This document shows, one piece after another, positions 7,726 to 64,000 of a DNA stretch of 64,000 nucleotides. The notes beneath the pieces were generated by a model. That model was given only the letters and a program-made list of their open reading frames with translations, did not search any database and was not told where the DNA came from. Within the stretch, counting starts at the first letter, position 1, and each line of letters opens with the position of its first letter. A program made the translations under genes and the position numbers. Origin of the DNA: Octopus sinensis (lineage: Eukaryota); contig NC_043014.1 of assembly GCF_006345805.1 (NCBI RefSeq), positions 13,082,001 to 13,146,000 of the forward strand. Reading direction: 5' to 3'.

Positions 7726-7895
7726 GCATAGGAGTGGCTGTGTAGTAAGTAGCTTGCTTACCAACCACGTGGTTCCGGGTTCAGTCCCACTGCGTGGCAC
7801 CTTGGGCAAGTTTCTTCTACTATAGCCTCGGGCCGACCAAAGCCTTGTGAGTGGATTTGGTAGACGGAAACTGAAAGAAGCCCGTCGTATATATG

Positions 7896-7935
<40 letters not shown>

Positions 7936-20948: not shown

Positions 20949-22723
20949 TTATCTTTGGGTATCTAATGATTTGGGCTGCCAGACTGGGGCTGTTGATTTA
21001 GGAAGTGCTGGCCGATTCCGAATGATATCTGCTGCTTTTTCAGCGAGCATGCAAGTCGGACCGTTTAAGTTGCCACTGACTACACTGGGCATGATTGAGG
21101 CATCTACGACACGAAGATTCTCAATTCCATAGACTTTAGTGTCAGGGCCGACCACAGCCATATTATCTGATGGATCTCCCATCTTGCACGTACAACATGG
21201 GTGATAGTTACTGTCAGACTTCTGACGGATAAATGCATCGATTTGTTTATCACTTTGGACATTGGGACCAGGAGCTAGTTCCTCACCTCTATAAGGATCA
21301 AAAGCTTTCTGTGCAAATATCTCTCTTGAGAGTTTGACATTATCTCTCATATCTACTACATCTTGTTCAGTTGTAAGGTAGTTAGCAATTATAATTGGAT
21401 GAACCTTAGGGTCTTTAGACATCAATTTCAAATAGCCTTTACTTGTAGGTCTCATAGGACCCACATAAAACTGATAAGCATGACATGAGCCTGCTTTGCG
21501 ACCATGATCATCCAAAGCAGATGGCAGAAAGTGGAATTGAATATCTGGATGTTCTACACCAGGTCTACTACGAATGAAACCTCCTGTTTCAAAATGAGAT
21601 GTAGCACCATCACCTGTAGATGTCAGAAACCATTGAAGTCCAATTTTAATCATGACATGTGGAAACTTCCATTGCGCTTTGTACAATGTGATTGGTTTAA
21701 GACATTTCTGTTGTAAGCAGACTACAAGATGATCCTGAAGATTTGAGCCTACACCAGGTAAATGATTAACAATTGGAATGTCCAGTTTTTTAAGGTCATC
21801 AGCATTGCCAATACCAGAAAGCATGAGAAGTTGTGGGGAATTGATAGCACCACCACTTAGAATCACTTCCTTGTTGGCCCTTACTTGGTGAATAACACCT
21901 TTCTGTTCGTACTCAATGCCAACTGCTTTGTTACCTTCGAAAAGGATCCTCCTGGCAAATGCATTTACTTCAGTGTCTAGGTTTGGTCTTTTTAACGACT
22001 TCCTCAGGTAAGCACTAGCTGTACTCCACCTCTTACCCTTGTGAACAGTCATGTCCATCCAACCAAATCCTTCTTGCTGGTAGCCATTCATATCATCAGT
22101 GAATGGGTAACCAGCTTGAACACCAGCATCAATGAAAGCTTGGTGCAGCTCGTTATTAGATTTACCCTGAGATACATGCAAGGGCCCTTCTCCTCCCCGA
22201 TATTCATCAGGACCCAGTTCATGTGTCTGAGATTTACGGAAATAAGGTAAACAGTCTGCATATGACCAGTTCAAAGCCCCTTCCTTTTCCCATCGGTCAT
22301 AATCAAGAGCATGACCCCGAATATATACCATTGCATTTAGAGAAGATGACCCACCCCAAACACGGCCCCTTGGCCAATACATTACTCGGTTGTCCATGCC
22401 TCTCTCCGGTTCTGTCATGTAGTACCAATTATATTTATCATCACATAGGTTGTATATCAGAGCTGCGGGCATGTGGATCTTCCAAGTATAGTCCTTTGGA
22501 CCAGCTTCCAATAGAAGTACAGTATTGTCAACATCTTCTGTAAGGCGATTACTGAGGACACACCCTGCAGACCCGGCCCCAACAACAACGTAACTATATT
22601 CCTTGGTGGCTGTTACTGAGTCTTTTGAAGATGTACTAAAATAACGACCAGTCGATTGGCTGCCTGAGAAAGGAGGTCGATGATGGCAGTGGGCAGTCAA
22701 CATACCAGGGTTTATCGGCAGGG
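20949..22723 (-). CDS. CHDH: Choline dehydrogenase-like terminal exon, distal copy (altered active site)
   Basis: Intact, 1775 nt, same acceptor. 29 aa differences from the proximal copy by my count, including DHLEVYI>DHLVVCL and SAYHP>SNYHP. Confidence 0.92.
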
Positions 22724-24372: not shown

Positions 24373-24430
<58 letters not shown>

Positions 24431-27413
24431 TAGAATACATTGGTTGCTGCATAGCAGCAAAGTTATAATCCTTTAGACAAGAGAAAAGGAAACATAACAT
24501 GAAAGGGAGTGAAAGGAGTGGGGATAGCATGAGTTATCGTTGGGTATCTAATGATTTGGGCTGCCAGACTGGGGCTGTTGATTTAGGAAGTGCTGGCCAA
24601 TTCCGAATGATATCTGCTGCTTTTTCAGCAAGCATGCAAGTTGGACCGTTTAAGTTGCCACTGACTACACTGGGCATGATTGAGGCATCTACGACACGAA
24701 GATTCTCAATTCCATAGACTTTAGTGTCAGGGCCGACCACAGCCATATTATCTGATGGATCTCCCATCTTGCACGTACAACATGGGTGATAGGCACTATC
24801 AGACATCTGACGGATAAATGCATCGATTTGTTTATCACTTTGGACATTGGGACCAGGAGCTAGTTCCTCGCCTCTATAAGGATCAAATGCTTTCTGTGCA
24901 AATATCTCTCTTGAGAGTTTGACATTATCTCTCATATCTACTACATCTTGTTCAGTTGTAAGGTAGTTAGCAACTATAATTGGATGAACCTTAGGGTCTT
25001 TAGACTTCAATTTCATATAGCCTTTACTTGTAGGTCTCATAGGACCCACATGAACTTGATAAGCATGATATGGGCCTACTTTGCGTCCATGATCATTAAC
25101 AGTAGATGGTAGAAAGTGGAACTGAATATCTGGATGTTCTACACCAGGTCTACTGCGAATGAAACCTCCAGATTCTAAATGAGATGTAGCACCATCACCT
25201 GTAAAAGTCAGAAACCATTGAAGTCCAGTTTTGATCATGACATGTGGAAACTTCCATTGTGCTTTGTACAATGTGATTGGTTTAAGACATTTCTGTTGAA
25301 TATAGACTTCAAGATGATCCTGAAGATTTGAGCCTACACCAGGTAAATGATTAACAATTGGAATGTCCAGTTTTTTAAGGTCATCAGCATTGCCAATACC
25401 AGAAAGCATGAGAAGTTGTGGGGAATTGATAGCACCACCACTTAGAATCACTTCCTTGTTGGCCCTTACTTGGTGAATAACACCTTTCTGTTCGTACTCA
25501 ATGCCAACTGCTTTGTTACCTTCGAAAAGGATCCTCCTGGCAAATGCATTTACTTCAGTGTCTAGGTTTGGTCTTTTTAACGACTTCCTCAGGTAAGCAC
25601 TAGCTGTACTCCACCTCTTACCCTTGTGGACAGTCATGTCCATCCAACCAAATCCTTCTTGCTGGTAGCCATTCATATCATCAGTGAATGGGTAACCAGC
25701 TTGAACACCAGCATCAATGAAAGCTTGGTGCAGCTCGTTATTAGTCTTACCCCGAGATACATGCAAGGGCCCTTTTCCTCCCCGATATTCATCAGGACCC
25801 AGTTCATGTGTTTGAGATTTACGGAAATAAGGTAAACAGTCTGCATATGACCAGTTCAAAGCCCCTTCCTTTTCCCATCGGTCATAATCAAGAGCATGAC
25901 CCCGAATATACACCATTGCATTTAGAGAAGATGACCCACCCCAAACACGGCCCCTTGGCCAATACATTACTCGGTTGTCCATGCCTCTCTCCGGTTCTGT
26001 CATGTAGTACCAATTATATTTATCATCACGTAGGTTGTACTTCAGAGCTGCGGGCATGTGGATCTTCCAAGTATAGTCCTTTGGACCAGCTTCCAATAGA
26101 AGTACAGTATTGTCAGTATCTTCTGTAAGACGATTACTGAGGACACACCCCGCAGACCCGGCCCCAACAACAACGTAACTATATTCCTTGGTGGCTGTCA
26201 CTGAGTCTTTTGAAGATGTACTAAAATAACGACCATTCGATTGGCTGCCTGAGAAAGGAGGTTGATGATGGCAGTGGGCAGTCAACATACCAGGGTTTAT
26301 CGGCAGGGCTAGAGGGTAAGAGAAAGATGAATACAAAGTAGGATATAGTAGTATAAATACAGCAGACAACATTCATAAATAAGCTCACTATTAAAAGCAG
26401 ACAAATAGGTAATTAAGGGAAAGGGACAGTTGGTTATACCAACCCCAGTAATTTACTAGTACCTATTTTATGAACCACGCAAAGAATGAAAAAGGAAAAG
26501 CGTATGATGTGAACTCAAAATATAAAGTGTCATATTTAAAAATGAAGGGTCATGGCCTTGTGATTAGGGTGTTGTACTCCCGATTCTGAATACCAGTCAA
26601 ATTATAGAGTTTACTGGGTACTTTTTACAAGGCACCAGCATTAGTGAGGTCACCAAGAGCTTGCTTGTACATGGTTGTTTGTGTGAATGTGTTTGTATTT
26701 TCCTCATCTTCACATGTGTCCATTTGCTAGTTTCTAAGCAATGCCTTCACTGATGGTATCATTTGCTTGTAGTTCACTGCGAAAGCATGTACAGGATGCT
26801 TTTTCAATTCTATATTTAAGAGATGAGGAATTATGTACATTATTTACATTTGACGGATATTTGTCCTCATCTTGTTTGTCATTAACACAACGTTTTGGCT
26901 GATATACCCTCCAGCTTTCATCAGGTGTCTTGGGGAAATTTCAAACCTGGGTTCTCATTCCTACGGTATTTTTCGATGTTATTATTATTATTATTGTTCA
27001 CTGCTTGGAATCGAACTCGGAATCTTGGGGTTAGTAGCCTGTGCTCTTAACCACTATGCCACATGCTTTTTTTTTGGTAGATTGGGTGATAATTGTCTCA
27101 CATGGAAGCAAATGGAGGTTGGCAACAGGAAGAGCATCTAGCCATGAAAATCTCAGTCCCAACAACAACAACTGAGAGTGGTGCAACATTCAGAGATAAG
27201 ACTGAATGACTCTTAAAACTTTAAGGTCTCTGCACAAGAGACCTTGTTTATGGCGCAGGAGTGGCTGTGTGGTAAGTAGCTTGTTTACCAACCACATGGT
27301 TCCGGGTTCAGTCCCACTGCGTGGCATCTTGGGCAAGTGTCTTCTACTATAGCCTCAGGCCGACCAAAGCCTTGAGAGTGGATTTGTTAGACGGAAACTG
27401 AAAGAAGCCCATC

Positions 27414-27458
<45 letters not shown>

Positions 27459-38700: not shown

Positions 38701-41700
38701 GTCATGCAAGCACAGAAAAGTGGACCTTAAACTGATGATGATAGGGTTTCATCAAAATACTGGGAGTGCATCTTTTGAACACCATTCCATGAATGGAAGA
38801 CACTGAGCTACGAAAGGTTAAGAAGCGCCATTTTACAATGAATTATCTTTTTTTTTTGTTGTTCTTGTTTCTAATAAAATAATCTATTTTATTAACATAA
38901 GTGCAGGAGTGGCTGTGTGGTAAGTAGCTTGCTTACCAACCACATGGTTCCAGGTTCAGTCCCACTGCGTGGCACCTTGCGCAAGTGTCTTCTACTATAG
39001 CCTCGGGCCGACCAAAGCCCTGAGTGGATTTGGAAGACGGAAAGCGAAAGAAGCATATATATATATATATGCATGTGTGTGTATATGTTTGTGCGTCTGT
39101 GTTTGTCCCCCCAACATCACTTGACAACCGATGCTGGTGTGTTTACATCCCCGTAACTTAGTGGTTCGGCAAAAGAGACTGATAGAATAAGTACTAGGCT
39201 AACAGAGAATAAGTCCTGGGGTCTATTTGCTTGACTAAAGGCAGTGCTCCAGCATGGCCACAGTCAAATGACTGAAACAAGTAAAAGAATATTTAATCTA
39301 GAATAATCTAAAACAGACCCCGTCTCTGCAAACAAATACCTTTTTGGTTAACAATCAGAACTTTTACTGGTTTATCTGTGAAGAAAAACAAGCTTTTGAA
39401 TATAATGAATGATTTGTGAGATGAAAATGAAGATGATATTTAAGTAAAGGAATGTTAGCTGAAAGAACAGAGAGAGAGAGAAATAGCTTCCACAGAACTC
39501 AAGACAAACTGTTGTTACGAGGTTTGTCAATTGAAATAGATCCCAGCATATTTTAAGTATTAAGTGTATTTTATCAGAAATCAGAAAGAAGCCAAGTAAA
39601 AATTAAGGGAACTACATAGGCATAGGTATGATTGTGATTAAGGTCACTTTGCAACCACATAGTTTTGGGTTCAGTCCCACTGCACAGCACCTTGAACAAG
39701 TGTCTTTTACTATAAGCCTTGGGTTGATCAATGCCTTGTGAGTGACTGCAGTAGAGGCAAGCCATTTGGAAGCTTCCCATATTAAAATCGGTGGACTCAT
39801 TTGTTGAGGACAGCAGATAATTTTTTGTAACTAAACACTTTCAAATTTCGGACACTGGTAGAATGTCTCATATAAAACATATTCTACTCTTAACATTTTT
39901 TAGAAAAGCTTATATTTAGGAAGTTATTTCATGTTAAAGTTCTTGGATTTCAGTAATTTCAACCAATCAATGACGTGTATTCAGCTGAATAAAATTACTG
40001 AATACATGTCATTGATTGGTTGAAATTACCGAAATAGGCCTACTTTGACGTGAAATTACTTCGTAAATATAAGCTTTTCTCAAAAATGCTAAGAGTAAAA
40101 CATATTTTATGACACATTCTACCAGTGTCCGAAATTTGAAAGTGTTTAGTTACAAAAAATTATTTTTAAAATCTGTACGTCAAAAGGTAAAGATCCCAGA
40201 TGAATGTTCCACAGCTTCCTGCTGAACAACCTGCACAGGTAATTTGTTTATATCAATCAAACGTCAGGTGCCAGCGATTGCAGAGCAACATAAAAATGAA
40301 GTGTTTTGCTCAAGAACTCAATACACTGCCTGGCCCTGATCTTGCGGTTTTGAATGCTACATGCCTTCTCTATCTCACACACACTTACTTGTACTTGTGG
40401 CGACATTCACCCTGGGCGGGTTGAGTCAGCTTCTACTACTCTCGAGGCATCTTGAACCATGGCAGCCCACGCATGATGGTCCTGCGTCAGTTCACTGGAG
40501 ATAGCGAGCCAGTCACAGTTCCATCGGCGCAGACTGACCACCTGCGGTCCCGTGAGCATGGAGAGGTCCTCCTTGATCATTGTAACCCAGGTCTTCAGCT
40601 GCCCGCCCGCGCGTTTCTGCCAGTTGGGAAGTGGAGTTGGGAGAAGGACATCATGGCTCAGTTCACCCACCGGACGCCTACATGCATGGCCAAACCACCG
40701 CAAGTGCCGTTGCAGAAGGACAGATGGAAGGGGCCACAGAGACAGGCGAAGTCGGAGATAGGCAGTGGGAACTCGATCCACCCGATGGCAGCGAAGAATG
40801 CACTGGAACCAGTCATTGTCGAAGACTTCCAGCCTTCATTGATCGACCACCCGCATAGGCCACGTTTCACAGCCATAGAGAAGTACTGTAAGAACAGTAC
40901 ACACATGTAATTGTGTGCATATGTAACTGGTATTGGTTTGTTTACATGCCCCTAATTTGGCAGTTCAGCAAAAGAGCCAGTAAAATAAGTACAAACTCAA
41001 GAAATAAGTACTTGGGTCAATTTTCAACACTAAAACACTTTAAAGCAGGCAGTGGCCAAGCATGCCGATGCCCAATGACCGAAAGAATTATAAAAGGTGA
41101 AAGATATACAGAATTTAGTTGAATGTTTTGTCCTCAGCCCTCAGCATCTGCACAGGTCAAAAGTTTTAAAATATTACCTGTTCAATAAATGTGCCAGGTA
41201 CTGCTGCACTCAACTGATTGTCTTAAAAATAAGATTTATTCTTCTTCATTACAGACTCACCTCCACCTCCACCACCATCACACAAAAACTGTTTTAGTTC
41301 ATGAAAATACAAAAACCTAGAAGAAAACAGGTGCAACCAGTTTATTCTATATCACAGTGCAACAGATAAGGTGAGGTTAACTATTTGAATGATTAATTAG
41401 TGAAAGTGTAAATGAAGCAAACTAGAAGCAGGTGACAGGTAAATGCAATTTATTAATTTTCTTTTGCAAATGAATCAAATTTCAATACAAACTTTTACAA
41501 TTTTTTGCTGTTATCTAATTCATGTAAACTTTTTGTTCCTTTGAAAAATTTGGAAATTGGTCTAAACTGTTGGAATTGTTAAAGAAGGGCAGTTAGAATC
41601 TCTGAAGTAAATGAAGAATTTTAATATGGTTTTCTTTAAAAAGAATGTTAAAATAATTAATACTGCTAAGAAATTTTAAAAAAAAGGGAATCATTTAATA

Positions 41701-44700
41701 AAATAGGAAGAAAGAAATGGTTGAGGAATGGATGGTTAAACTAAAAGAGCAAGACATCAAATTCCCAAATTTCTCACAACAGATTTGTTCTTTTTCATTA
41801 CAGGGGAAGAGAATAGAGAGACAGGTGGGTGTAGAAATAAAATGAACATGAGTTTATAACTAACAAGCTTTGTAAAGGTGAATACTTTAATACACAGAAA
41901 AAGATGACAGTCTTCTTGTAAAAAAAACAATTAAAAAATGCAAAACAGAATATTTATATATACACACATATATATGTATATATATATATATTATATATAT
42001 TTACAATTAGAATACATTGGTTGCTGCATAGCAGCAAAGTTATAATCCTTTAGACAAGAGAAAAGGAAACATAACATGAAAGGGAGTGAAAGGAGTGGGG
42101 ATAGCATGAGTTATCGTTGGGTATCTAATGATTTGGGCTGCCAGACTGGGGCTGTTGATTTAGGAAGTGCTGGCCGATTCCGAATGATATCTGCTGCTTT
42201 TTCAGCAAGCATGCAAGTTGGACCGTTTAAGTTGCCACTGACTACACTGGGCATGATTGAGGCATCTACGACACGAAGATTCTCAATTCCATAGACTTTA
42301 GTGTCAGGGCCGACCACAGCCATATTATCTGATGGATCTCCCATCTTGCACGTACAAGATGGGTGATAGGCACTGTCAGACATCTGACGGATATATGCAT
42401 CGATTTGTTTATCACTTTGGACATTGGGACCAGGAGCTAGTTCCTCACCTCTATAAGGATCAAATGCTTTCTGTGCAAATATCTCTCTTGAGAGTTTGAC
42501 ATTATCTCTCATATCTACTACATCTTGTTCAGTTGTAAGGTAGTTAGCAACTATAACTGGATGAACCTTAGGGTCTTTAGACTTCAATTTCATATAGCCC
42601 CTACTTGTAGGTCTCATAGGACCCACATGAACTTGATAAGCATGGCATGGGCCTACTTTGCGTCCATGATCATTAACAGTAGATGGCAGAAAGTGGAATT
42701 GAATATCTGGATGTTCTAAACCAGGTCTACTGCGAATGAAACCTCCAGATTCTAAATGAGATGTAGCACCATCACCTGTAAAAGTCAGAAACCATTGAAG
42801 TCCAGTTTTGATCATGACATGTGGAAATTTCCATTGTGCTTTGTACAATGTGATTGGTTTAAGACATTTCTGTTGAATATAGACTTCAAGATGATCCTGA
42901 AGATTTGAGCCTACGCCAGGTAAATGATTAACAATTGGAATGTCCAGTTTTTTAAGGTCATCAGCATTGCCAATACCAGAAAGCATGAGAAGTTGTGGGG
43001 AATTGATAGCACCACCACTTAGAATCACTTCCTTGTTGGCCCTTACTTGGTGAATGACACCTTTCTGTTCGTACTCAATGCCAACTGCTTTGTTACCTTC
43101 GAAAAGGATCCTCTTGGCAAATGCATTTACTTCAGTGTCTAGGTTTGGTCTTTTTAACGACTTCCTCAGGTAAGCACTAGCTGTACTCCACCTCTTACCC
43201 TTGTGAACAGTCATGTCCATCCAACCAAATCCTTCTTGCTGGTAGCCATTCATATCATCAGTGAAGGGGTAACCAGCTTGAACACCAGCATCAATGAAAG
43301 CCTGGTGCAGCTCATTATTAGTCTTACCCCGAGATACATGCAAGGGCCCTTCTCCTCCCCGATATTCATCAGGACCCAGTTCATGTGTCTGAGATTTGCG
43401 GAAATAAGGTAAACAGTCTGCATATGACCAGTTTAAAGCCCCTTCCTTTTCCCATCGGTCATAATCAAGAGCATGACCCCGAATATACACCATTGCATTT
43501 AGAGAAGATGACCCACCCCAAACACGGCCCCTTGGCCAATACATTACTCGGTTGTCCATGCCTCTTTCCGGTTCTGTCATGTAGTACCAATTATATTTAT
43601 CATCACATAGGTTGTACATCAGAGCTGCGGGCATGTGGATCTTCCAAGTATAGTCCTTTGGACCAGCTTCCAATAGAAGTACAGTATTGTCAGCATCTTC
43701 TGTAAGGCGATTACTGAGGACACACCCTGCAGACCCGGCCCCAACAACAACGTAACTATATTCCTTGGTGGCTGTCACTGAGTCTTTTGAAGATGTACTA
43801 AAATAACGACCAGTCGATTGGCTGCCTGAGAAAGGAGGTCGATGATGGCAGTGGGCAGTCAACATACCAGGGTTTATCGGCAGGGCTAGAGGGTAAGAGA
43901 AAGATGAATGATAAGAAGTTTGTACAATAGATAACAATTATATATAAGTTCACTTTAAAATCCAGACAGAACAAAACTAATACCTGAAGCAAGTGACTAA
44001 TAATATTATAAAATAAGTTAATAATGATTAAATTAATTAAAGAACAAAATAAATAAAAATGACATAAATGCTGCGGTAATTAAGGTGACAAGGGTAAAGC
44101 AAACGAAGCATATCACAAAGGTAAAGGATTACAATACATTCATAATAATAATAATAATAATTCTTTGCCCTAGGTGTCGGGAAGACACCCAGCAAGAAAT
44201 GGAAACATAACTGAAAGAAAAAAAAAATAATAGTAATAAGATCTCTTGCCTGGGCAGTGTTGTAGGAGAAGGCAGCAGAAGTACTCTTTAGAAAGGTACT
44301 TATGATCAACCACTCCAAAACAAACAAACAAATAATAGATAAATAAAAATAAATAAAGTGAAATAAAGAAAAACACCAACAAATCAAACTTTCGAAGCTA
44401 TCAAATCTTCAACATTTTTCTGATTTCTAATATTAGTGTGTCTAGCTAAAAAAATTTCTAACGGTAAGGTACAACCAACTGATTCAACTTTGGTATATTG
44501 CTGGTAGTTATTTTATCAATAATTTGATAAATAGATGAAAGGTTGATAACCATTAAAGACTGCACAGTACTGTTGTTCTCCTGATTCTGCCATCCGACTG
44601 CCCTGGACATACTAATGGCAGCATTAAGACTATTCTGTAGAGACCTGAATAAGTGGAAATCCGAAGGAGCAATATTTGGTGAATATGGAGGGTGGAGTAA

Positions 44701-45898
44701 CATATCCCAGCCGAGCTGCAGCAATTTTTGTCTGGTTCCCAAAGCATCAAGTGCTGAAAATGAACTTTCTTATCTTCGATTTTAAAGGGTTACAGAATTA
44801 ACACAGGTTATAAGAACATAAACCTTCTTCCACAAAAAGATAGCTTAAACTGTGCTCTAAATGGAGGTGTAGTCAAATCCTATTTTATGGACTCAACCAT
44901 GTTCTAAAATAAGTCGAAAGGTAAGCTACTATAAATTGGCACGAACTTTCCAGACAGCCCAATAAATAAGCATCATACTTGACAGAGTAATCTGAATGCT
45001 GAAGAACTAATTAAAACAAAGGCAGTGTATTTCAACAGAAATATGGTAACAAAAGGGTTAAAGACCCTCTAGAAGAGGGAGTTTTACATTTTTCAAAGCT
45101 TGTGTAACTGCTACTAAAAGATTTCTTCATATTCTTCGTTTAACATTTATATTCTTTCTTCAAGAACAGATATCTGAAATAATCTATTGACTATTGTGTT
45201 TCCCTATTGATCATAAGTAACAAAGTATAACAATATGATACTGTGACTGGTTCAGTTGATTGTACCATCTACCCTGCAACAAATAATAACCTAGTGCCTG
45301 CAAATATATATAAATCAAAATAAGCAACAAGGATATCCAGAGATAATGCAGTACAATCGTTTCATGCAGCTCCATTTAATTGAACAATGCAATCATTACA
45401 TCAATTTAAAATGAAGAGCAATCCTCAGCTGTACAAAGACATAGAATTTAATTAAATTAGAACAGATGGACACATTAGTATAATTATACCTAAAATCTTC
45501 AAGAAGTTAAGGAGATAGACAAAGAACATGCTGGCAGAGTCTGTAACAATGTATATCTTCTTGATAACTTCTATGCTGGAGTGAAGCCAGCATGTTCTTT
45601 GTCTATCTCCTTAACTTCTTGGAGATTTTAGGTATAATTATACTGTGTCCATCAGTTCTAATTTAATTAAATTCTATGTCTTTGTACAGCTGAGGATTGC
45701 TCTGCATTTTAAATTGATGTAATGATTGCATTGTGCAATTAAATGGTGTTGCTTGAAACAATCATACTGCATTCCCTATGGATATCCTTGTTGCTTATTT
45801 TGATTTTAATCACCTTACTTTGAAATTGTATGGCTAATACCATACTAAATTCTGGTTCCTCAACTTTAGTACCATATTCATCTGAATCTAAATTTTTG

Positions 45899-51241: not shown

Positions 51242-54200
51242 TCTTTACTCTTTTACAGTTATTTGACTGCAGCCATGCTGGAGCACCGCCTTTAGCTGAG
51301 CAAATTGACTCCAGGACTTATTCTTTGTAAGCCTAGTACTTATTCTATCGTTCTCTTTTGCCAAACTGCTAAGTTATGGGTATGTAAACACACCAGTATC
51401 GGTTGTCAAGCGATGTTGGGGAGATAAATACAGACACACAAACAAACATAATATATATATATATAGGTGTACGTTAGTTTAACAGTAGCACGCTTGCCAC
51501 GAATACATAGACATGTGGGTTTGCATTCCATAAATACGGCAACCCCTACTTTTTTCTGTTGAGGGCCTATATGCACCAACATTAGACTATTTGCCTTAGT
51601 CAATGCACAGTGATCACTTATAAAAAATATTATCATTATTCACACACACACACACACGTATGTATATATAGGTATATTTATGCATATATTCTTGTCATTT
51701 AATGTCCAGGTTCCATGCTTGTATGGGTTGGACCGTTTGACAGGATCCGATATATCCAAGGACTGCATTATGCTTCAATGTCTGCTTTAGCATGGTTTCT
51801 AAGGTTGGATGCCCTTCCTAATGCCAACCACTATAAAACTTGGACTGCATGCTTTTTTTTTATGAGCCACCTGCACTATAAATACACATATACGCGCATG
51901 CACACACACATGTATTATGTTTCTTTGCGTGTAATTATGTAATAGTCATATGGAATTAGGAGATCACACAACTGTTGATTTAACGCAAGTAAAGTCCTGT
52001 GGTCATCAAATATGTCCCTTCAGATCTCAAACACTCAAATTACGTACGTACATATATATATATATATAAAAGCAAATATATGTTACATCTATAAACAAAT
52101 GTTACATGTTTCTTTATATATGTGTATGACTTATTTGTTTATATGTACAGGTAACATATAAAAGAATGTTATATATATACACAAGAATATAGATATATGT
52201 AACAAATACATAATAAAAAGAAATATATAAAGAAATATGTTACATATAGAGAGAGAAAAAGGGGGAGAGAGAGAAAATGGGAGGGAAAGCGAGAGCGAGA
52301 ATGAATTTCATTATTCAACGACATAGTAAATGCATCGTCAGGTTATTCAATCATTACCTTTTTTGTTGGAGGGCTGAGGAGATTTGATAATTTTAATGTC
52401 AGAGACTGGATCAAGAAGGTCCCAGGCAGTGGGTAGTATGTGATCAGCGTGGGGTGCAAGCTCAGCTTTCGAACCAGTGCCACTAAGAACCCCAATGCTT
52501 GCCTGTACATGGGCCTTTTTTCCAGAGTTGAGGTTTTTAGCACAGTCACTCACCACTATTGCCTCTGAAGGGGTGACACCCAGTTCATTACAGATCAAGG
52601 ATGTTGCGTTGACTTCGGAGTTGCTGTCGTCTCCACACACCATCATATCCACATACTTCATTAAGCTGAATCGGTCGAGTATCTTGAAGGTTTCCTCGCG
52701 TGCATCTTGTGACATGATAGCAATCTTGATTTTATTTCGCTTCAAAGTTTTGAAAAGATGCTGAAGGTCTCCCAGAACTTTCAGATCTCCATACAATGAG
52801 TTCTTACAGTCTTTCCATGCCTGATTAACAGTCACTAATGATTCTTCATAACCAAGACCTTGTTCTCGAAGAAGTGACTTTAGAGCATCTTTAATCTCGG
52901 CTTTGGGACGTTCCGCAAGGATACCATGCTTCACCTTAAGAGATATTTTACAAATTCCAAGGCGTGAATAAACCTCTTCCATTAGTTCCATGTGTGTTAG
53001 TTCTTCGAGCCTGCAATGAAAAAACAAAGAAATCTTGTATTGTAATTAATAGTTTCAAATTTTGGCACAAGGCCAGCAAATTTCAAGGAAGGGGCAAATT
53101 AATTACATCAATCCCAGTGTTCAACTGGTAATTTATCGACCCCGAAAAGATGAAAGGCAAAGTCGACCTTGGTGGAATTTGAACTCAGATCGTAAAGACA
53201 GACAAAATACCACTAAGCATTTTACCCGGTGTGCTGACAATTCTGCCAGCTCGCTGCCCTAATGTTGCATATAATTAATGTTAACAAATATATAACAGAA
53301 GAAAATAGTTTGAAAGCAACCTTCTTATAGTTAAAGCAGGAGTGGCTGTGTGGTAAGTAGCTTGCTTACCAACCACATGGTTCCGGGTTCATTCCCACTG
53401 CATGGCACCTTGGACAAGTGTCTTTTACTATAGCCTCGGGCCGACCAAAGCCTTGTGAGTGGATTTGGTAGATAGAAACTGAAAGAAGCCTGTCGTATAT
53501 ATGTACATGTGTGTGTGTATGTATGTATATATATGTGTGTGTGTGTGTGTGTGTTTGTCTCCACAACATCGCTTGACAAATGATGCTGGTATGTTTACAT
53601 CCCTGTAACATAGCGGTTAAGCAAAAGAGACCGATAGAATAAGTACTAGGCTTACAAAGAATAAGTCCTGGGGTCGATTTGCTTGACTAAAGGCGGTGCT
53701 CCAGCATGGCCGCAGTCAAATGACTGAAACAAGTAAAAGAGTAAATCTAACTTCATACCAGTCTTATTTCACAGTTAAGGAAAAGTTCTTAGATGTTTTT
53801 GTCTTAGATTTCATTATAATTTTCTCTAGGTATTTTTTGTTTTGTTTTCTTTGTTTTCTTTTATCACATTGCTAATACACATGCTAATCTGTTGCATATT
53901 ACTAACACAGATATGTAGCACATATACGCAAAAAAAAAAAATCGAAAAAGAAAAACCCAAACAACTTCGTATGTAAATTGGTTCTCATATTTCTGTTTCT
54001 GCTGTTAGTCAAGCAAATATCTAAATAGTTTGGATTTTTGTGAAACAGTGTTTCACTTACATAGAAAAGTTCAGCAGCACTTTATGGGTGAAAAGAAAGG
54101 AAAAAATACAGTAATTGGATTGGTTTAGAGAAATGCTTGCTGAAAACTGTACAGCTAAGATAAGATCAAAAATGCTAGTTGCCGTAAGTGACAGAGGTAG

Positions 54201-57200
54201 AATAAGGAGAGGTTGGGAGAAGTAGGGTACGAACAAACCAGTATAGAAATATAGGAATACTAGCAGTATAGCCCGGCGTTGCTCGGGTTTGTTTTCTTTT
54301 CGACCCTTTAGAATTGGAATTTTTGAAAAGTAAAACTTTTGCATTATGTAGCTTGTTATTCTCTTTAAGTGAATATTTTTCTGGTTGAAATACACCAAAA
54401 AATGGTGACACACCAGTAAAAATATCGTAAAAAATAGGGATTTTTCATAGAAAAAAAGCACCTTTTTGATGTCAATAATTTTTGGTCTTAACATGGTCCG
54501 ATTTGAATATTTTCTTCTACGGAATGAAGAGTAAGCCTTCTATCATACTCTCAATTTTAGTCAACTTGCGCCGCAGGGTCTCAGAAGAGATAGTGTTAGT
54601 TGAAGGCTACCAAACCTGCCACACACAGACAGACAACTTTAGCTTTATATATAAAGATTATCAGACTTAAATTATTATTACTCTGTAAAAAGTGACACAC
54701 TATTGAGTTGCCTGTTGGTATTAGCAGATCCAAACAAGCAATATTTGTATGAAAGAGTTGCAGGATTAAGATACCTACAGAGTGTGGTTTCTTGTGCAAT
54801 CATGTAGTTCAATAATGACTTGTGTGGGAATTCGGAAGATGGAAGCAGTGTGGAAGACAATTGTATTTATGTGTGCATATATGGGATTTGGACAAAATAA
54901 TGGAAACACCTTAAGAATTCAACCAAATTTATTTTAATATGGGGCAGGACTGCCTTTGGCAGTAATTACAGCTTGAATTCTACAAGGTATGGACTAGTAT
55001 AAAGTTTGAATTGTTTCTAAAGGAATTTTTGATTAACACCAGTATAATAGTATAATACAGAATGCTGTGTGACTTTTACCTGAGAATGTACCTTAAGAAT
55101 ATAAAAATATAAAACAAAGCTATGTAGCTCTACAGGCCGACTTATGACCAGTCAGTCAGAACACCATTTGTGGTCATAAGTTGATGACGACCTGTATGTG
55201 TGTAAATACAAATAAGGTGGTGAGCTGGCAGAATCGTTAGCATGATGATGATATATCTGTCTTGCATACTATATCAAATGTGTTGTGCAAGAGAGACGAC
55301 TGTGTTGGTATGGTCATTTGTTACTTATGGATGAGGACAGCTGTGTGAGGAAGTGCCACACCTTAACTGTGGAAGGAACCTGTGGAAGAGGTAGACCCAG
55401 GAAGACATGAGATGAGGTGTTTAAGCATGACCTTTGAACATTGGGCCTCTCAGAGGCAATGACAGAAGACTGAGACCTTAGGAGATATGCTGTGATTGAG
55501 AAGACACAGCAACTAAAGTGAGATCACAGCCATGGCTGATGCCAGTGTTACCTGTCCAGCACATTTAAGAGTACCCTTGATGTTTGGGCGATATGATATG
55601 CTTGAGAAGACCTGTTGAGTCACTTAAAACCAAAATCGTAGCTGTGACCAGTACCCACTGACTGGATCCTGCTCTGGTGGCACATAAAATGCATCATCTG
55701 AATGTGATCGACACAAGTGTTCCTTGACTGCCGGTGGCATGTAAAAAACACCATTCGAACGTGGCTGATGCCAGTACTCGCTGACTGGCTCCTGTGCCTT
55801 TGGCACGTAAAAACCACTATCTGAACGTGGATGACGCCAGTGCCCCGTGACTGGCTCCCATGACGTTGGCATGTAAAAAAGTACCATCTGAACGCGATCA
55901 ATGCCAGGCCCGCCTGACTGGCTCCTGTGCAGGTGGCACATAAAAAGCACCCACTACATTCTCAGAGTGGTCGGCATTTGGAAGGGCATCCAGCTGTAGA
56001 AACATTGCCAGATCAGAGTGTGGTTCAGCCGCTGGCTCTCTAGACCTCAGTCAAACTGTCCAACCCATGCCAGCATGGAAAACAGATGTTAAATGATGAT
56101 GATGATGATGATGCCAACCCTTTTACAGAGTGTACTGGGTGCTTTTACACAGTACATTCTTTTGATACCGGCCTATCCAAGACTGCCTCTGCTTCTATGA
56201 CAAACTTCCTGTCATAAAGTGATCCAAATCAAAACACTCAACCAAAATTTCATGTAAGTTTATGTTACAAGCACCAGCTTAATTAAAGACAGTTATTTTA
56301 CTAAATTCTTCATTATTTTCCTAAATTAACTGAAACAAAAGCAGTGCATTTCAACAGAAATATGATAACAAAACGGTGGAAATATGTCCAATAACAAAAC
56401 AAATTGACAATTTAAATAAAAGAATAAGAAATTAAAAAATACCTTTTAGCAATTTGTTTTGTCCAATTTAACCAAACAGCTTCGGAACAGACTAAGGTAC
56501 CATGCAAATCAATAATGGCTAACGAAACCTTCTGCTCAGGTAAATTTTCTCCAAGACTTTCCTCTTCCCCAAAATGACGTTCGATTAGGATGCGTTCAGT
56601 CGAATATACGTAACAGTCTTTCCATTCCTCTGTCGGCATTATCAATGGTAGCAAGTCCTGAACATTTTGAATGATATGGTCAGCATTAGGCTGCAAATCA
56701 GTCTTACCGCCCACACCACTCAATACCCCAACACTTAAGCCAAGATTGGCTGCCCTCCCCATCATGACATCTACTTTAGTGTCTCCAACCATGACAGCCT
56801 CAGATGGATCCACTCTCAACTTCTTGCAAATCATCAAAGCATTATGTGGAGATGGTTTGGGTTCTGACAAAGCATCGTCTCCACATACGATGAGATCGAC
56901 GTTTTTGGACAGGTTTAAGATTTCAAGAAGTTCTTCAGTAGGTTTTCTAGAATCTGCCGTGCAAATAGCAACTTTCACTTGCTTTTGTTTAAGAACTTTG
57001 AAAAGGATTTGCAAATCAGCCAAAGATCGCATTGTTTCTGGGTTCTTGTTGTCGCCATGATCTAAATTCTCATCAACTAGCTCTTCAGCTCGTTGCAATG
57101 AAAACCCTTCTTTTATCAATAACTTTATTAACTCTTCCTTAATTATTGGACCAGTTGCCTCTGCCAACAGCCCAGGTACTACTTTATTGGAGAGTGTGCA

Positions 57201-60200
57201 GTAGCCCAACATATCATAGACTTTCTTCTGGAGCGGAAGACCAGTAGCATTTGATAACCTGTAAGGATAAAGGAATTATGTTCAAGTTCTTGATACAGTA
57301 TGCTAACTACCCTCAAAAGGAACATAGCATTTAAAATATACAAGTGCTAGTTAATCTTTATTAGTAAGTAAAAAAAATAGCATCCACCCAAACATTTGCT
57401 TTGGAAATATGGAAAAAAATTTTTTTTTTTAATTTTTAGAAAAAATTAATTGGTTGTGGGGAGGATGTGATGTCTTCACATACTGTTACATTAAAAACTT
57501 TATGCACTCAAGCAATTGGTTAGGAGTAAAAACTAGTCACAGATAGCAATCAAAATATTTATTTAACCCTTTAGCATTCAGATATCTTTGTCAAATGTAT
57601 TGCTTATTTATTCACATTGTTTTGAATTAGTCATGCATTATTTTGTAGCTTCAAGATTTCAATGTTGTGTTTGTATATTTTTAGAATGACATTGTAGGTT
57701 AAGTGTGAGAGATTATATCTAGTTAGTTTTAACATAAAACAGGTAGAATATTTGGGCCAGAATGGCAAGATTAAATGCTAAAGGGTTAAAATTTCAATGA
57801 AAACAAAACATTTGCCAGTTTTTGGTGTTGTAGTATGACACAACAGAAATATGCATACACTATATGGAGAGTGATTACAGTTTCCCCCCATTGCTACCAT
57901 AGCCATCTAAGGTTAACCCTTTCGTTACTATATTTCTGACCAAAATACACCCCTCATGAGTTTCAATTAAGTTCTAAAATAATCATGAATCTAGGCTTGT
58001 TTCATTAAATAACTGTAACTTTTTTACTTATCAACATATTAATGTGATATTTGGAACATAATTAAAGAAAGGGTTCTTAATCAATTCTATTGCATAACTT
58101 TTGTCTCAAAGTGACTTTAATTACAGGTAAATCCAGGTAAATTGAGCAAAAGGTAAAAATATTAAAATTTTAAAATGAGCAAAAGGTAAAAATATTAAAA
58201 TTTTGTTTAAACATCACCATAGAAAACGAATCATCAGCTAATATTAAAATGGGTATGCAACAAAATTTTGATAAAGAAGAATTGTGCACATCACTATATC
58301 CTCAGTTGAATTTAATGCACAACAGGTGTACCATAAAGGTGGAATAAACTGAAATATTGGAATCCACCGTAAGTTTGACCGAACTAAAGAAATCGGTCAA
58401 AAAATAATATACGGCCCTGGTTATGGTATGGAAGTGATAAATTCCAGACCACATCGTTCCCTAGGCCATGCTGACTAACATTATTTTCCCTGTAAAAAAA
58501 CTAAATCCACGCAGTACCCAGTATTTGCTTCACAAATTTTCCGAAATTTGAACCCCCATTTTGTGTTTGTTTACGTTCTGCGTAAGTTTGTTTCCGCATT
58601 GATTGCTTCAAACAATAACTTCCAAACCACATTGTACCCTAAGCCATGCTGACTAACATTAGTTTCCCTGTATAAAAACTAAATCCACAACAGTACCCAG
58701 TATTTGTTTCACAAATTTTCCAATTCAGAATCAATGCTTGATAACATGAAACTCCTATCTATTTTCAAAGTTGAAGAAAAATCGATGCCGAAAAAAATGT
58801 TGAAAAAAATCTCCCAAAATTCAGGGAATTAAAATTACACGTCGATCTTTGTATGAAACTGTAGATTAACTGTTTACGAAGTATAATCACGTTTTCACGA
58901 ATGTACTAAAGAGATTTGCTCTGATATTCTCATTTAAATATGAATTCGGGCGGCTTTGGGCGGTTTGGTAACGAAAGGGTTAAAATTATTATTATGTTAA
59001 CTTAAATAGACTTGTACAAACTGAATGTTCCATTAACACAACAGAATTGGTTACTTCTTACACAACTGACAAATGCATCAACTAGAAGTTGATGAACAGG
59101 TTAAAATCAAACTAACTTATAATGATTAATTTTTTTTTTTTTAGGTTAGTTTATTGGAGACAGGAATGTATAGAATCGCACAGCTATTTAGGAATGGAAG
59201 ATCCTCTTGAATTATTATCAAATACTACCAATAGTTTTGAGAAGTGCATCGTAAATTTGGTAAAGTCTTAAAAAGAAAAGAAAATGTAATTTTTTTTTTA
59301 TGACAAAATAATGTTTTCCATTCCCTAACTGGCACCAATAAATTATTCCATATTTAATCCTCCAAAAAATTATCAGATATATCAGAGTACTTCTGAACCA
59401 TGGGCATGGTTTTTAAACGGATTTTCCAAGTAGCAGACAACCATACATTCTCACATCCACACGAGACATGATACATACTTACTTTTCAGCCAAATTCTTA
59501 GCCCAAGGTACCCACATCGACTGGAAGCAGATTAAGGTACCATCTTTGTCAAATATCACCAAAGACATCTTCTTCCGCTTGCTGGAGTCTTGTTTAGTGT
59601 TTGAAGTTTTGTCATCATTACGCTGCTTCTTTAGATTGGCTTGTGCAGCCGAACTGTAGAGCACCCTCTGACCTTGGTCTGCAACACACCAACCCACATA
59701 ACAACAACGACCCAAGGTGCATGAAGACACCAATCACTAACTAAACACCCTAAAATTATTATCTACAACATCTAGCTGGGAGGGGAACAATGCGCTTTAA
59801 ATATTAACACTACAAGTGTATTGTTTATGTTTTTTATAGTTAGACCTCTTTTTCTCTCTCTTCAACAATATTTAACTGAAAATTACCAGTTTTTTTAATA
59901 TATAAACATTTTAGGAAAAAACACAGTTGACAAGATAGAAGAAAAGTCTTAGAATGAACAACAAAAATAGCAAAACTTATTCTCAAAACTACACCAATAC
60001 AAAGCATTCAATATTGTAGTTTGCCTACTTAAACATTTACATTTTAAAATCTGCTCATGGTGGAAACATGTCACCATGACTTTTATGTTAGCAATAAATA
60101 ATAGATATTCATGCCATTGAATAAGAATTCAATAAAATGAATGGACAATTGAAATTCTAGAAGTATAAAACAACTAGAAAATTAAGCTTTATTACTCAGA

Positions 60201-61019
60201 CTTGTCATGAGTTTAAAGCAAGTTTGTCACATTTTAGCGGATAAACTGCTAACTTGAAAAAATCTGTTACATGACTTTAACAATTACAGAAATACAAAGT
60301 TTGAGAGAGAAAAAAAGTAGGAAACAAGGTGTAAATTATTATAGAAATAATTTTTGTAAGAATTTGTCATTGCAAAGTTATTTCATAATCAAACAATCTT
60401 TTTCATTTAGATTTAAAACTGACCAAAAGAAAATAAATTTTTCTTTTTTTTTTTTTACAGAAATTCCAAAGATTTTCCTAAGTAAATTAATAGCTAAATG
60501 TTGTAGATACATTTATTTAAATATGGATGCTAACATAACTACATAAAAAAACTGAGCTGTTCATCCATGATCTGTTCACTATTTAATCCCAAAACACAGC
60601 AATTTATTGCCCAGACATAGCTATTCTTTCTCACCATACTGTCTCTACATAGGTGAGAGAACAGCAATGGAGGAAGAAGCAAAGAACAATATTGAAGCAT
60701 CATAATTTTAATATTTTATAATGCACAGCAAAATATTGCATTTCAATAATTGCTCATACTAATACACATACACACATACATATGCAAAAAACATATGTTC
60801 AAAGATTGGGTAAACCATACGGTAGCAAGTACATACCTGTAGAGGAAATCCTGCAGGCGCTTAAGACAGAGGCATCGGCCACAGCAGAACAGGAGCTGAG
60901 TCTTGACAAACTTTTGCTACGGCAACGAGATGTCAGCCTCAGAGCCTTAGGTAGATGCAACATATTGCAAACTCTATCAGAGATTTCAAAAACCAGATAT
61001 CAGCCAATTGTGATGTTTT
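20949..61019 (-). CDS. CHDH: Predicted multi-exon HAD phosphatase x2 / choline dehydrogenase fusion gene (1188 aa) with three alternative CHDH terminal exons
   Basis: Hand-assembled coding exons of 127+196+816+653+1775 = 3567 nt (1188 aa + stop). All introns are GT-AG with matching phases (1,2,2,1) and there are no internal stops. The exon containing the ATG has an acceptor at 61020, so a further non-coding 5' exon probably lies upstream. No transcript data seen. Confidence 0.8.
22724..24350. repeat. Duplicated intron segment, paralogous to about 26309-27640
   Basis: Shared unique sequence (agggacagttggttata..., caacattcagagataagactgaatgactc...) and the same SINE at the same position in both copies. 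Confidence 0.9.
23044..23270 (-). mobile_element. SINE family B insertion with 15-16-bp TSD; other family-B copies near 27820, 28830, 29050, 31200, 31400, 31600, 37150, 47160, 53070, 62650
   Basis: Flanked by ccgattctgaatacc at 23029-23043 and 23271-23285. The paralogous site near 26580 is empty. Confidence 0.9.
24534..26308 (-). CDS. CHDH: Choline dehydrogenase terminal exon, middle copy
   Basis: Intact, same 1775-nt length and same acceptor. 14 aa differences from the proximal copy by my count. Confidence 0.92.
31790..31950 (+). mobile_element. RTE LINE extreme 3' end with (GAT)n tail
   Basis: [34 protein letters not shown], then stop and gatgatgat. Confidence 0.6.
35550..36700 (-). mobile_element. 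Degraded pogo/Tigger-type transposase remnant
   Basis: Hand translation gives [29 protein letters not shown] and [17 protein letters not shown], resembling Tigger DDE_1 motifs. Many stops; boundaries approximate. Confidence 0.6.
39817..40163. repeat. About 345-bp near-palindromic (foldback) element; partial second copy at 36686-36890
   Basis: ataattttttgtaactaaacactttcaaatttcggacactggtagaatgt is reverse-complementary to the right end, and the inner arms also pair. Confidence 0.85.
40400..40860 (-). mobile_element. RTE-clade LINE 3' end
   Basis: [15 protein letters not shown]...[18 protein letters not shown]...WAAMVQD. Confidence 0.8.
42111..43885 (-). CDS. CHDH: Choline dehydrogenase terminal exon, proximal copy (canonical active site)
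   Basis: GAGSAG FAD motif, [49 protein letters not shown]. Preceded by CATTCATCTTTCTCTTACCCTCTAG|CC (phase-1 acceptor). The ORF-track start upstream of this runs through intron sequence. Confidence 0.95.
44620..44760 (-). mobile_element. Mariner transposase C-terminal fragment
   Basis: [31 protein letters not shown] (YSPDLAPSD motif). Confidence 0.85.
45312..45806. repeat. Long inverted repeat (arms ~225 bp, spacer ~50 bp) in the HAD-CHDH intron
   Basis: aaatcaaaataagcaacaaggatatcc...aagaacatgctggc / gccagcatgttctt...ggatatccttgttgcttattttgattt. Confidence 0.85.
52358..53010 (-). CDS. Coding exon 4: degenerate HAD domain 2
   Basis: Acceptor TTTTTTCATTGCAG|G (phase 2), 653-nt open frame paralogous to exon 3 ([33 protein letters not shown]). 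It ends in donor AAG|GTAATG (phase 1). Confidence 0.88.
55270..55520 (+). mobile_element. RTE LINE 3' fragment
   Basis: LCWYGHL...[26 protein letters not shown]. Confidence 0.7.
56443..57258 (-). CDS. Coding exon 3: rest of HAD domain 1 (motifs [27 protein letters not shown]) and start of HAD domain 2 (IIDLHGTL)
   Basis: Acceptor TTATCCTTACAG|G (phase 2), 816-nt open frame, donor AG|GTATTT (phase 2). Motifs are typical of phosphoglycolate-phosphatase-like HAD hydrolases. Confidence 0.9.
57567..57785. mobile_element. About 220-bp piggyBac-type MITE; other copies at 28306-28525, 47792-48010, about 37988-38208
   Basis: TTAA|CCCTTTAGCA...TGCTAAAGGG|TTAA termini and shared internal sequence. Confidence 0.75.
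57917..58979. mobile_element. Non-autonomous piggyBac-type element in the HAD intron
   Basis: TTAA|CCCTTTCGTTAC...GTAACGAAAGGG|TTAA (12-bp perfect TIR, TTAA TSD). Internal direct repeat of about 80 bp near 58460 and 58620. Confidence 0.85.
59483..59678 (-). CDS. Coding exon 2: linker and HAD motif I ([11 protein letters not shown])
   Basis: DxDGT motif and strong donor AA|GTAAGT (phase 2). The 5' boundary uses GTTGCAG|AC (phase 1, matching exon 1), but its pyrimidine tract is weak, so the start is less certain. Confidence 0.8.
60837..60963 (-). CDS. First coding exon: mitochondrial-presequence-like peptide [42 protein letters not shown]
   Basis: Not in the ORF track. Acceptor TTTTTGTTCTGCAG ends at 61020, ATG at 60963, donor CAG|GTATGT at 60836 (phase 1). 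The peptide is R/S/L/K-rich with no acidic residue in the first 29 aa. Confidence 0.7.
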
Positions 61020-61849
61020 CTGCAGAACAAAAACAAAAATAAAATATTAGTGGAATGCAGATGAGGGTTTTATATATTAATTTTGTAAACAGGATAATAA
61101 AAAAAAAATTAAAAAATTAAAAGCAGGAAGTGAGATAAGTTTGTGTGCCAGAAAGGAAAGTAACAAGCAACATTTCAAAAATGGAGCAACGGGCGTGGCT
61201 GTGTGGTAAGTAGCTTGTTTACAAACCACATGGTTCCGGGTTCAGTCCCACTGCGTGGCACCTTGGGCAAGTTTCTTCTACTATAGCCTCGGGCCGACCA
61301 AAGCCTTGTGAGTGGATTTGGTAGACGGAAACTGAAAGAAGCCCGTCGTATATATGTATGCGTGTCTATGTTTGTGTGTCTGTGTTTGTCCCCCTAGCAT
61401 TGCTTGACAGCCAATGCTGGTGTGTTTATGTCCCCGTTACTTAGCGGTTCGGCAAAAGAGACCGATAGAATAAGTACTGGGCTTACAAAGAATAAGTCCC
61501 GGGGTCGATTTGCTCGACTAAAGGCGGTGCTCCAGCATGGCCGCAGTCAAATGACTGAAACAAGTAAAAGAGTATGGGGAAATCACCGCACAAATGTCTT
61601 TGAACACAGGTCTGTTTGATTAAATCTAACCTGGAACTAAATATCAATAACATCACATTTCTTTTTATTGAATTCACTAGGTACAAGCATGGCTGTGGTT
61701 CAAAGAAGTTTGTTTTCCAACTGTGCGATTTCAGGTTCAATCCCATTACATGGTACCTTAGGTAAGTGTCTTCTATAACTTGAGTGAAATCAACAGATGG
61801 AAACTATGCACAAGCACATCATTCATATAGAGAGAGCACTTTCCATATA

Positions 61850-63179: not shown

Positions 63180-64000
63180 TACATAGAGAGAGAGACAAGA
63201 GACAGGGATACAATATCCAGGTGGGTACCATTCAAGTACTTAGTTGTAATCCAGGCCAAGGCCAACCACATCAAGCTGAAATGAGCACCTAGAATTACGA
63301 GAGATAAGCAATCCAACTGTATTTTATCCCATAGGTAAATCCAGAGTTCACTTATCTGGATTATGAATATTTAACCAAGTGTATATCCAATTCAGTAACA
63401 AAGAATATGGAGATTAGTACAACTGCATAATTCTTGGTAAGTATCTTGCTTACCAACCACATGGTTCTAGGTTCTAGCCCCCCTGCATGGTTCTAGGTTC
63501 AGTCCCACTGCATAGCACCTTGGGCAAGTGTCTTCTACTATAACCTCGGGCTGACCAAAGCCTTGTGAGTGGATTTGGTAGACGGAAACTGAAAGAAGCC
63601 TGTCGTATATATGTATATATGTTTGTGTGTCTGTGTTTGTCCCCCCAACATCACTTGATAACCGATGCTGGTGTGTTTACGTCCCCATAACTTAGCGGTT
63701 CGACAAAAGGGACCAATAGAATAAGTACTAGGCTTACAAAGAATAAGTCCTGGGGTCGATTTGCTCGACTAAAGGCAGTGCTCCAGCATGGCCAAAGTCA
63801 AATGACTGAAACAAGTAAAAGAGTAAAAGAGTATCCCTCTGGAGCCACCAGCAGCTAAGTGACCTCACTTGTGCTGGCACCATGAAACAAAAAAAAAATG
63901 CACCCATACATGCTGTAAGGTAAATGGAATTAAGGAGAGTATGAAGCCATAGAAACCATGCCAACGCAGACACTGGATAACACAGTGTAACACAATCTTT

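Follow-up and report, generated by a model that had tools for sequence, protein, structure and literature searches.

The window analysed here, 64,000 nucleotides of Octopus sinensis DNA, carries on its minus strand a five-exon gene model in which HAD phosphatase-like modules are joined to a choline dehydrogenase (CHDH), together with two further copies of the CHDH exon (Table 1). The HAD exons were located by tblastn with fusion proteins from the database, and reading of the splice sites gave the model. All sites are GT-AG and the model is in frame throughout, giving a protein of 1188 amino acids and 132 kDa composed, in order, of a presequence, a first HAD module (HAD-A), a degenerate second one (HAD-B), a linker and CHDH. 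A HAD-CHDH fusion had been proposed in the initial annotation, and as a gene architecture it is borne out by canonical, phase-compatible splice sites and by one-exon orthologues. Searches of the protein databases returned no spliced HAD-CHDH product from Octopus, an Rfam scan of the window gave 0 matches, and Pfam gave 0 matches on seven other open reading frames (ORFs).

Table 1. Coordinates, within the window, of the HAD and CHDH exons and of the features at their joint.
Feature	Positions	Strand	Description
Candidate exon 1	60837..60963	(-)	ORF, phase-1 donor gtatgt and phase; homology support none
Exon 2	59483..59678	(-)	End of N-terminal presequence region and HAD motif I (FDKDGT)
HAD-A exon (exon 3)	56443..57258	(-)	3' end encodes the degenerate motif I of HAD-B (IIDLHGT)
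HAD-B exon (exon 4)	52358..53010	(-)	Ends in phase-1 donor (AAAAAAG, then gtaatg), compatible with the CHDH acceptor
Donor gtaatg, then immediate in-frame stop (GND*)	52347..52357	(-)	18-nt block AAAAAAGGTAATGATTGA conserved in relative L008
Polypyrimidine tract and AG acceptor of CHDH exon	43886..43909	(-)	Identical in all 3 copies
CHDH exon copy 3 (exon 5 of fusion model)	42111..43885	(-)	Linker and whole GMC oxidoreductase, stop included
Internal Met (residue 605 of 1188-aa model) and 26-codon presequence-like stretch	43788..43865	(-)	No D/E
R-Y-F-S-T-S (R624-S629 of model)	43791..43808	(-)	MPP R-2 type motif, found at residue 624
CHDH exon copy 2	24534..26308	(-)	Same acceptor as copy 3; ATG 26288; presequence R9Q, T18N
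CHDH exon copy 1	20949..22723	(-)	Same acceptor as copy 3; ATG 22703

Pfam recognises two HAD stretches in the 1188-aa model, GMC_oxred_N at residues 640-930 and GMC_oxred_C. The catalytic motifs I-IV of HAD-A are intact (FDKDGT, CTAD, PKPS and GDTKVD), and the generic HAD-IA model is the only one that it passes. HAD-B is 41% identical to HAD-A; its motif I reads DLHGT (the DLH also occurs in relative L007), the Lys of motif III is deleted, motif IV reads SDCAKN, and the HAD-IA motif set is incomplete. HAD-B is probably non-catalytic. At the N-terminus, the first 28 residues of exon 1, an exon proposed from its ORF, donor and phase only, contain 6 R/K and 0 acidic residues and form a separate, basic presequence candidate, distinct from the stretch at the joint; the fusions of Mytilus, Ptychodera and Branchiostoma likewise have basic N-termini. 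At the other end of the HAD part, reading on through the HAD-B donor meets an in-frame stop after 3 codons, conserved in L008, so that a HAD-only product through read-through of this donor is possible. With fusion proteins as tblastn queries, HAD exons were found upstream of copy 3 only, and tblastn of 22.8 to 42 kb found none beside copies 1 and 2.

The three CHDH exons begin in the same manner. On the minus strand, copy 3 reads from 43909 to 43863 as tcatctttctcttaccctctag, ending at the acceptor, followed by CC CTG CCG ATA AAC CCT GGT ATG, and in each copy 20 nt, made up of a split codon and six codons (A-L-P-I-N-P-G), separate acceptor and ATG. An ATG seven codons past the acceptor had been reported for every copy (43865, 26288 and 22703); these coordinates and the 584-aa ORF starting at each of them were confirmed, the ORF of copy 3 reaching its stop at 42111. 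The agreement of the copies on this ATG is trivial, because they are 96.6-97.9% identical (copies 3 and 2, 97.9%; copy 1 against either, 96.6-96.7%). Across the copies the N-terminus of the ORF reads MLTAHCHH(R/Q)PPFSGSQS(T/N)GRYFSTSS, with an exact match between copies 3 and 1 and the two exchanges R9Q and T18N in copy 2. The sequence also confirmed the description of a stretch free of acidic residues that ends in R-Y-F-S-T-S before the GMC domain, D/E being absent before residue 28 of the ORF.

Judged by its profile matches, the ORF from each ATG is a choline dehydrogenase (BetA/CHDH, a GMC oxidoreductase). The NCBIfam BetA equivalog TIGR01810 is matched with 763 bits, above its cut-off of 732, the Pfam domains PF00732 and PF05199 (GMC N and C domains) are both present, and GAGSAGC is invariant in the alignment. 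The BetA match begins only at residue 33-38 of the ORF, with the presequence-like stretch lying upstream of it. A partial model from Octopus bimaculoides (XP_014788184.1), 96% identical, carries the identical stretch and uses the same acceptor.

Among the copies dN/dS is 0.20-0.36, and all three therefore appear to be under constraint (purifying selection). Strong homology between them extends from 24 nt upstream of the acceptor, with weaker homology to ~90 nt upstream; copies 1 and 2 have a further 1.3 kb of upstream sequence in common, and the 3' flanks of copies 3 and 1 match over ~330 nt, where copy 2 contains a repeat insertion. Because intron sequence and 3' flank are shared, the copies are, on this evidence, products of DNA-level duplication and not of retroposition, and no poly(A) remnant of a retrocopy was seen in them. 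The initial annotation had suggested the capture of a complete intronless CHDH, possibly a retrocopy. This did not hold: Mytilus and Ptychodera share the fusion with an intronless CHDH part, and a stand-alone bivalve CHDH is intronless too, as is the CHDH part in all invertebrate loci examined. A processed retrocopy was rejected on the shared intronic polypyrimidine tract, the weaker upstream sequence, the ~330 nt of 3' flank and the ancient fusion. Copies 1 and 2 may each serve the HAD gene as an alternative last exon, be independent genes, or be spliced to other upstream exons. In XP_014788184.1 a non-HAD upstream exon is joined to the CHDH acceptor; this upstream exon, which maps to 33388-33266, was dropped from consideration, since ATG and GT donor are both missing from it in this window and it looks repeat-derived.

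The fusion itself extends well beyond the octopuses. HAD-CHDH proteins of 800-907 aa occur in Branchiostoma belcheri, Glandiceps, Ptychodera, Mytilus and many further assemblies, the HAD-phosphatase-CHDH gene thus being common to at least hemichordates, amphioxus and molluscs. The gene of Mytilus californianus and Ptychodera flava consists of three exons, of which the last takes in the remainder of HAD, the linker and the entire CHDH, while in relative L007 a HAD-A exon (ending DLHGT) precedes a single ORF with HAD-B, linker and CHDH. Because Mytilus, Ptychodera and L007 share this architecture, the fusion and the intronless CHDH part are ancient and not an octopus capture. Two further relatives look like cDNA-derived sequences and point to genuine fused mRNAs: P0122, which comes from a 1741-nt JGI contig, covers the end of HAD-A, HAD-B and the linker and continues into CHDH, lacking the intron of the genomic loci, and P0125 is a transcriptome-derived HAD-CHDH. 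Relative L001 was also considered as a transcript and rejected, since it looks genomic, its upstream 1.3 kb being non-coding and the same acceptor being present. A literature search for the HAD-CHDH fusion found no paper describing it.

By the same comparison, the novelty of the octopus lineage is an 8.5-kb intron within the linker. Its donor block, AAAAAAG followed by GTAATGATTGA, is kept in L008 though the adjoining upstream coding sequence has diverged, and its acceptor block (a 24-nt polypyrimidine tract with AG) is identical at 23/24 nt between octopus and L001. Upstream of the acceptor block, the comparison of octopus with L001 gave no conservation beyond polypyrimidine tract and AG, and no conserved promoter.

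The linker was characterised in 25 fusion proteins, which are phylogenetically non-independent, and expectations were taken from linkers shuffled 500 times. Acidic residues (D+E) make up 3.2% of the fusion linker, compared with 12% of the rest of the protein and 2.6% of the N-terminal presequences of stand-alone CHDH; the corresponding values for S+T are 32%, 11% and 22%, and R+K accounts for 13% of fusion linkers and 13% of stand-alone presequences. The motif [RK]x[FY]S[TS] is present in 21 of the 25 linkers, against an expectation of 0.8 and a maximum of 4 in the 500 shuffles, and at least two strict copies are found in 11 of the fusion proteins. A looser form occurs in 24 linkers, in 15 of which its first residue stands 25 residues ahead of the first Rossmann glycine. 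In the alignment before GAGSAG, R-x-F-S-T-S is the only conserved island of the fusion linkers and occupies one aligned column, and the presequence region of stand-alone CHDH aligns with the fusion linker. All three octopus copies have the motif intact, copy 2 having lost an upstream Arg; the octopus linker is only weakly basic and no longer has the second motif copy that many relatives carry upstream. These last two features, and the non-independence of the 25 fusions, are points against fusion and cleavage.

One alternative reading is a chance resemblance, with a low-complexity joint and an incidental ATG. The acid-free run of 47 residues, the longest in the protein, is reached by 29% of shuffles and is not significant alone, for which reason it was rejected as single-sequence evidence; nor is an in-frame ATG within ~25 codons unusual. 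Chance is nevertheless highly improbable as an explanation, the motif and the composition being conserved across phyla far beyond the shuffle expectation. Conservation of the motif in orthologues, which the initial annotation had named as a check, was found in hemichordate, amphioxus, bivalve and many further fusion proteins, and the comparison thus indicates that conservation of motif and linker composition across species does exceed chance. The proposal of a presequence-like stretch at the joint, ending in a R-x-[F/Y]-S-T motif of the type cut by the matrix processing peptidase (MPP), is supported by both. With high confidence, the linker can be read from the alignments as the ancestral N-terminal CHDH presequence, retained at the joint of an ancient fusion.

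The position of the motif relative to the fold was addressed with AlphaFold2 on the CHDH exon product (38 aligned sequences). Residues 1-36 have a pLDDT of about 30 (<50) and no secondary structure, and the first strand begins at residue 40; for these reasons the motif is predicted to lie outside the fold, in a disordered stretch. According to the R-2 rule, an Arg stands at -2 and an aromatic residue at +1 of the cut, and internal MPP cleavage of Arg5,6 takes place at RSY, RGY, with subsequent trimming of one residue (PMC8734313). Animal ACAD10 is split by two MPP-consensus cuts (PMC11342911), and the linker motif agrees with these too. The octopus sequence RYF/STS fits the R-2 rule, with a predicted cut between Y625 and F626 and possible one-residue trimming of F626.

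We give about an even chance to a model in which the ancestral CHDH presequence was kept as a linker and the precursor, once imported, is cut by MPP into a HAD module and CHDH. One of the three CHDH exons would be spliced to the HAD exons. The precursor would then be imported by means of the strongly basic exon-1 presequence, MPP would cut at the conserved R-x-[F/Y]-S-T of the unfolded linker (here R624-Y625/F626-S-T-S), and F626 may be removed after the cut. The predicted products are a HAD-HAD module of ~66-68 kDa and a CHDH of ~63 kDa. By analogy with the known cases, cleavage at R624-Y625/F626 is the best-supported mechanism, although we regard it as evenly poised between right and wrong.

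The same precursor could instead remain whole, much as phosphatase and dehydrogenase stay joined in bacterial MtlD, which makes osmolytes; it would then be a bifunctional HAD-CHDH enzyme in which the linker serves as a flexible Ser/Thr-rich tether and the motif is kept for phosphorylation, membrane contact or another reason. The fusion has been kept very long, often within one exon, which suggests a benefit of linkage, a HAD-dehydrogenase bifunctional enzyme is among the PDB and NCBIfam matches, and the predicted disorder of the linker would suit a tether. A simple tether leaves unexplained, however, why an Arg at -2 and an aromatic residue at +1 should keep a fixed distance from the fold, why the motif is repeated, and why the composition is identical to that of true CHDH presequences; moreover, cleavage occurs in the animal and fungal cases known to carry this signature. 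As a rival, the uncleaved bifunctional enzyme is weaker and distinctly improbable.

The more substantial challenge to cleavage of a fused precursor concerns the internal Met. HAD-HAD may be one gene in this lineage, ending at GND*, and each CHDH exon a gene of its own, intronless or preceded only by an exon that is non-coding. Translation of these CHDH genes would start at the ATG at 43865, 26288 or 22703, which would make the stretch a presequence of the usual N-terminal kind. Such an arrangement could coexist with the fusion as dual use. In its favour, L008 has kept the stop past the HAD-B donor, both octopus and L001 have a Met close behind the acceptor (within 2-7 codons), copies 1 and 2 have no HAD exons yet show dN/dS of 0.20-0.36, and the O. 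bimaculoides model attaches a non-HAD exon to the CHDH acceptor. The bivalve Mercenaria has an intronless CHDH (P0040) that stands alone and has a presequence of its own, and in copies 3 and 1 a TATA-like box precedes the acceptor by ~60-75 nt.

Other points speak against it. The Met is conserved within Octopus but stands 7 codons past the acceptor there and 2 codons past it in L001, and elsewhere its position is not fixed, some Met being present in the linker of 12 of the 25 fusions. The peptide from the internal Met contains 2 Arg (1 in copy 2), whereas the Mercenaria presequence has 8 R/K and exon 1 has 6. The conserved block upstream is polypyrimidine tract and AG, that is, a splice acceptor; the phases of HAD-B donor and CHDH acceptor match; the O. 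bimaculoides upstream exon lacks an ATG or GT donor in this window; and the TATA-like box is not conserved in L001. Separate genes are on balance unlikely. With an unfixed Met, a weakly basic peptide and a motif intact in 3 copies, the stretch is a better fit, on sequence grounds, to an internal processing site than to a self-sufficient targeting signal. Dual use from the internal ATG, also raised in the initial annotation, fared unevenly: the variable Met outside Octopus and the 2 Arg weaken it, while, with purifying selection on the HAD-less copies 1 and 2, stand-alone or alternative-last-exon use may occur. Dual or stand-alone use of the CHDH exons is less likely than not. It may be added that the GND* stop 3 codons past the donor and the Met past the acceptor make two separate genes formally possible, and that both, like the lack of HAD exons near copies 1 and 2, are points against fusion and cleavage.

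Internal cleavage of a fused precursor by MPP has precedents. Yeast Arg5,6 and Atp25, on which MPP has a 'tailor' activity (PMC8734313, PMC5063612), resemble HAD-CHDH in placing two modules in one ORF, in combining an N-terminal presequence with an internal presequence-like junction that carries an R-2 motif, and in the conservation of the junction motif among fusion homologues. HAD-CHDH differs from them in being of animal lineage, in uniting a HAD phosphatase-like part with a GMC flavoenzyme, in a junction traceable to what was once the downstream enzyme's N-terminal presequence and split by an intron in octopus, and in that its cleavage is a prediction. Mammalian ACAD10 is likewise an animal mitochondrial multidomain precursor of ~130 kDa, with an N-terminal HAD without the full DxD and a C-terminal flavoenzyme freed by internal MPP-consensus cuts (PMC11342911). 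It has two cut sites (PMC11342911), and many HAD-CHDH linkers also have two motif copies. ACAD10 differs from HAD-CHDH, however, in that the catalytic partners of the two are unrelated and its cut falls between kinase and ACAD domains (PMC11342911), and comparison of the two linkers gave no evidence of homology.

Among stand-alone enzymes (vertebrate CHDH, Mercenaria P0040 and bacterial BetA), the octopus CHDH part is 66-78% identical to the animal CHDHs compared; their presequence is N-terminal and more basic, whereas that of octopus is internal, behind ~600 residues of HAD modules. Bacterial MtlD is similar to HAD-CHDH in that a HAD-IA phosphatase is fused to a dehydrogenase (mannitol-1-phosphate) in a compatible-solute pathway, but it belongs to prokaryotes, is not cleaved, lacks a targeting signal and has an unrelated dehydrogenase fold.

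Drawing these lines together, we tentatively propose, at somewhat less than an even chance, that the ancient HAD-phosphatase-CHDH gene encodes a composite mitochondrial precursor which MPP splits at the former CHDH presequence. In octopus, a linker intron and triplication of the CHDH exon would then pair one HAD module with three CHDH paralogues, or the CHDH exons may in addition serve as genes in their own right, with the peptide used again as their N-terminal signal. Internal cutting by MPP is well documented in fungi, while among animals ACAD10 was the sole case found in the literature. If the proposal is true, HAD-CHDH would be a second, widely conserved animal case of a composite mitochondrial precursor and, with a junction traceable to an earlier N-terminal presequence, would show how fusions of mitochondrial enzymes stay workable. 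Its natural junction variants, with 1, 2 or 3 motif copies and with or without the intron, would also be available for studying what makes an internal site cleavable. The fusion furthermore connects a mitochondrial HAD phosphatase that is so far uncharacterised with glycine betaine synthesis in marine invertebrates, at its first step, and thereby suggests a candidate substrate for it, for example phosphocholine.

The second HAD domain of the fusion (HAD-B), judged from its motifs, is catalytically degenerate. Motif I reads DLHGT instead of DxDGT, a deletion has removed the lysine of motif III, and SD..N stands at motif IV, with the DLH change common to the relatives L007 (a locus) and P0122 (a homologous protein). 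In this the octopus domain resembles the non-catalytic HAD domain of ACAD10.

The entire choline dehydrogenase (CHDH) exon is present three times, with 96.6–97.9% identity between copies and dN/dS among the three of 0.20–0.36. Copy 1 carries substitutions where the sequence is otherwise conserved: HLEVYIQQ has become HLVVCLQQ, and QVHVGP has become QFYVGP. The 3′ flank of copy 2 holds one inserted copy of a dispersed repeat of ca. 400 nt with the core ...GTCATTTGACTGTGGCCATGCTGGAGCACCGCC...; the copies of this family are 82–93% identical to one another.

Features on the 64,000-nt stretch
Feature	Position	Strand	Note
HAD-B coding parts	56443-56530 + 52358-53010	-	second HAD domain, catalytically degenerate by sequence
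Stop codon directly 3′ of HAD-B donor (KK/GND-stop)	52347-52357	-	conserved; L008 counterpart 10690-10710
CHDH exon copies (triplication)	20949-26308 + 42111-43885	-	pairwise identity
Homologue of N-terminal exon of XP_014788184.1 (O. bimaculoides)	33266-33388	-	homology
Dispersed repeat copies, ~400 nt	7725-8152, 24120-24350, 27257-27632, 35042-35438		
Dispersed repeat copies, further	38904-39288, 53337-53745, 61189-61574, 63486-63832		

The counterpart of the partial O. bimaculoides model's N-terminal exon has neither an ATG nor a GT donor in the window, and that annotated exon may be repeat-derived. Within the linker intron, ca. 500 nt (45312-45806) are 88% identical to their own reverse complement and form a palindromic or inverted repeat. 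GC skew is strongly positive at 2001-4000 (0.53) and 6001-8000 (0.49) versus approximately 0 elsewhere; no long tandem repeat was found, and Pfam gave no hit for the 283-aa ORF at 6061-6912 (-).

In the linker between HAD-B and CHDH, many HAD-B-type fusions (P0003-P0036, alignment A2) carry an extra motif copy, [AST]-R-[ST]-[YF]-S-T, ca. 25–40 residues upstream of the main R-x-[F/Y]-S-T motif; in octopus this upstream position has decayed to TAHCHHR. At the HAD-B donor, the distant relative L008 keeps both the donor and the adjoining stop, through which an unspliced intron could, on the reading frame, permit a HAD-only isoform.
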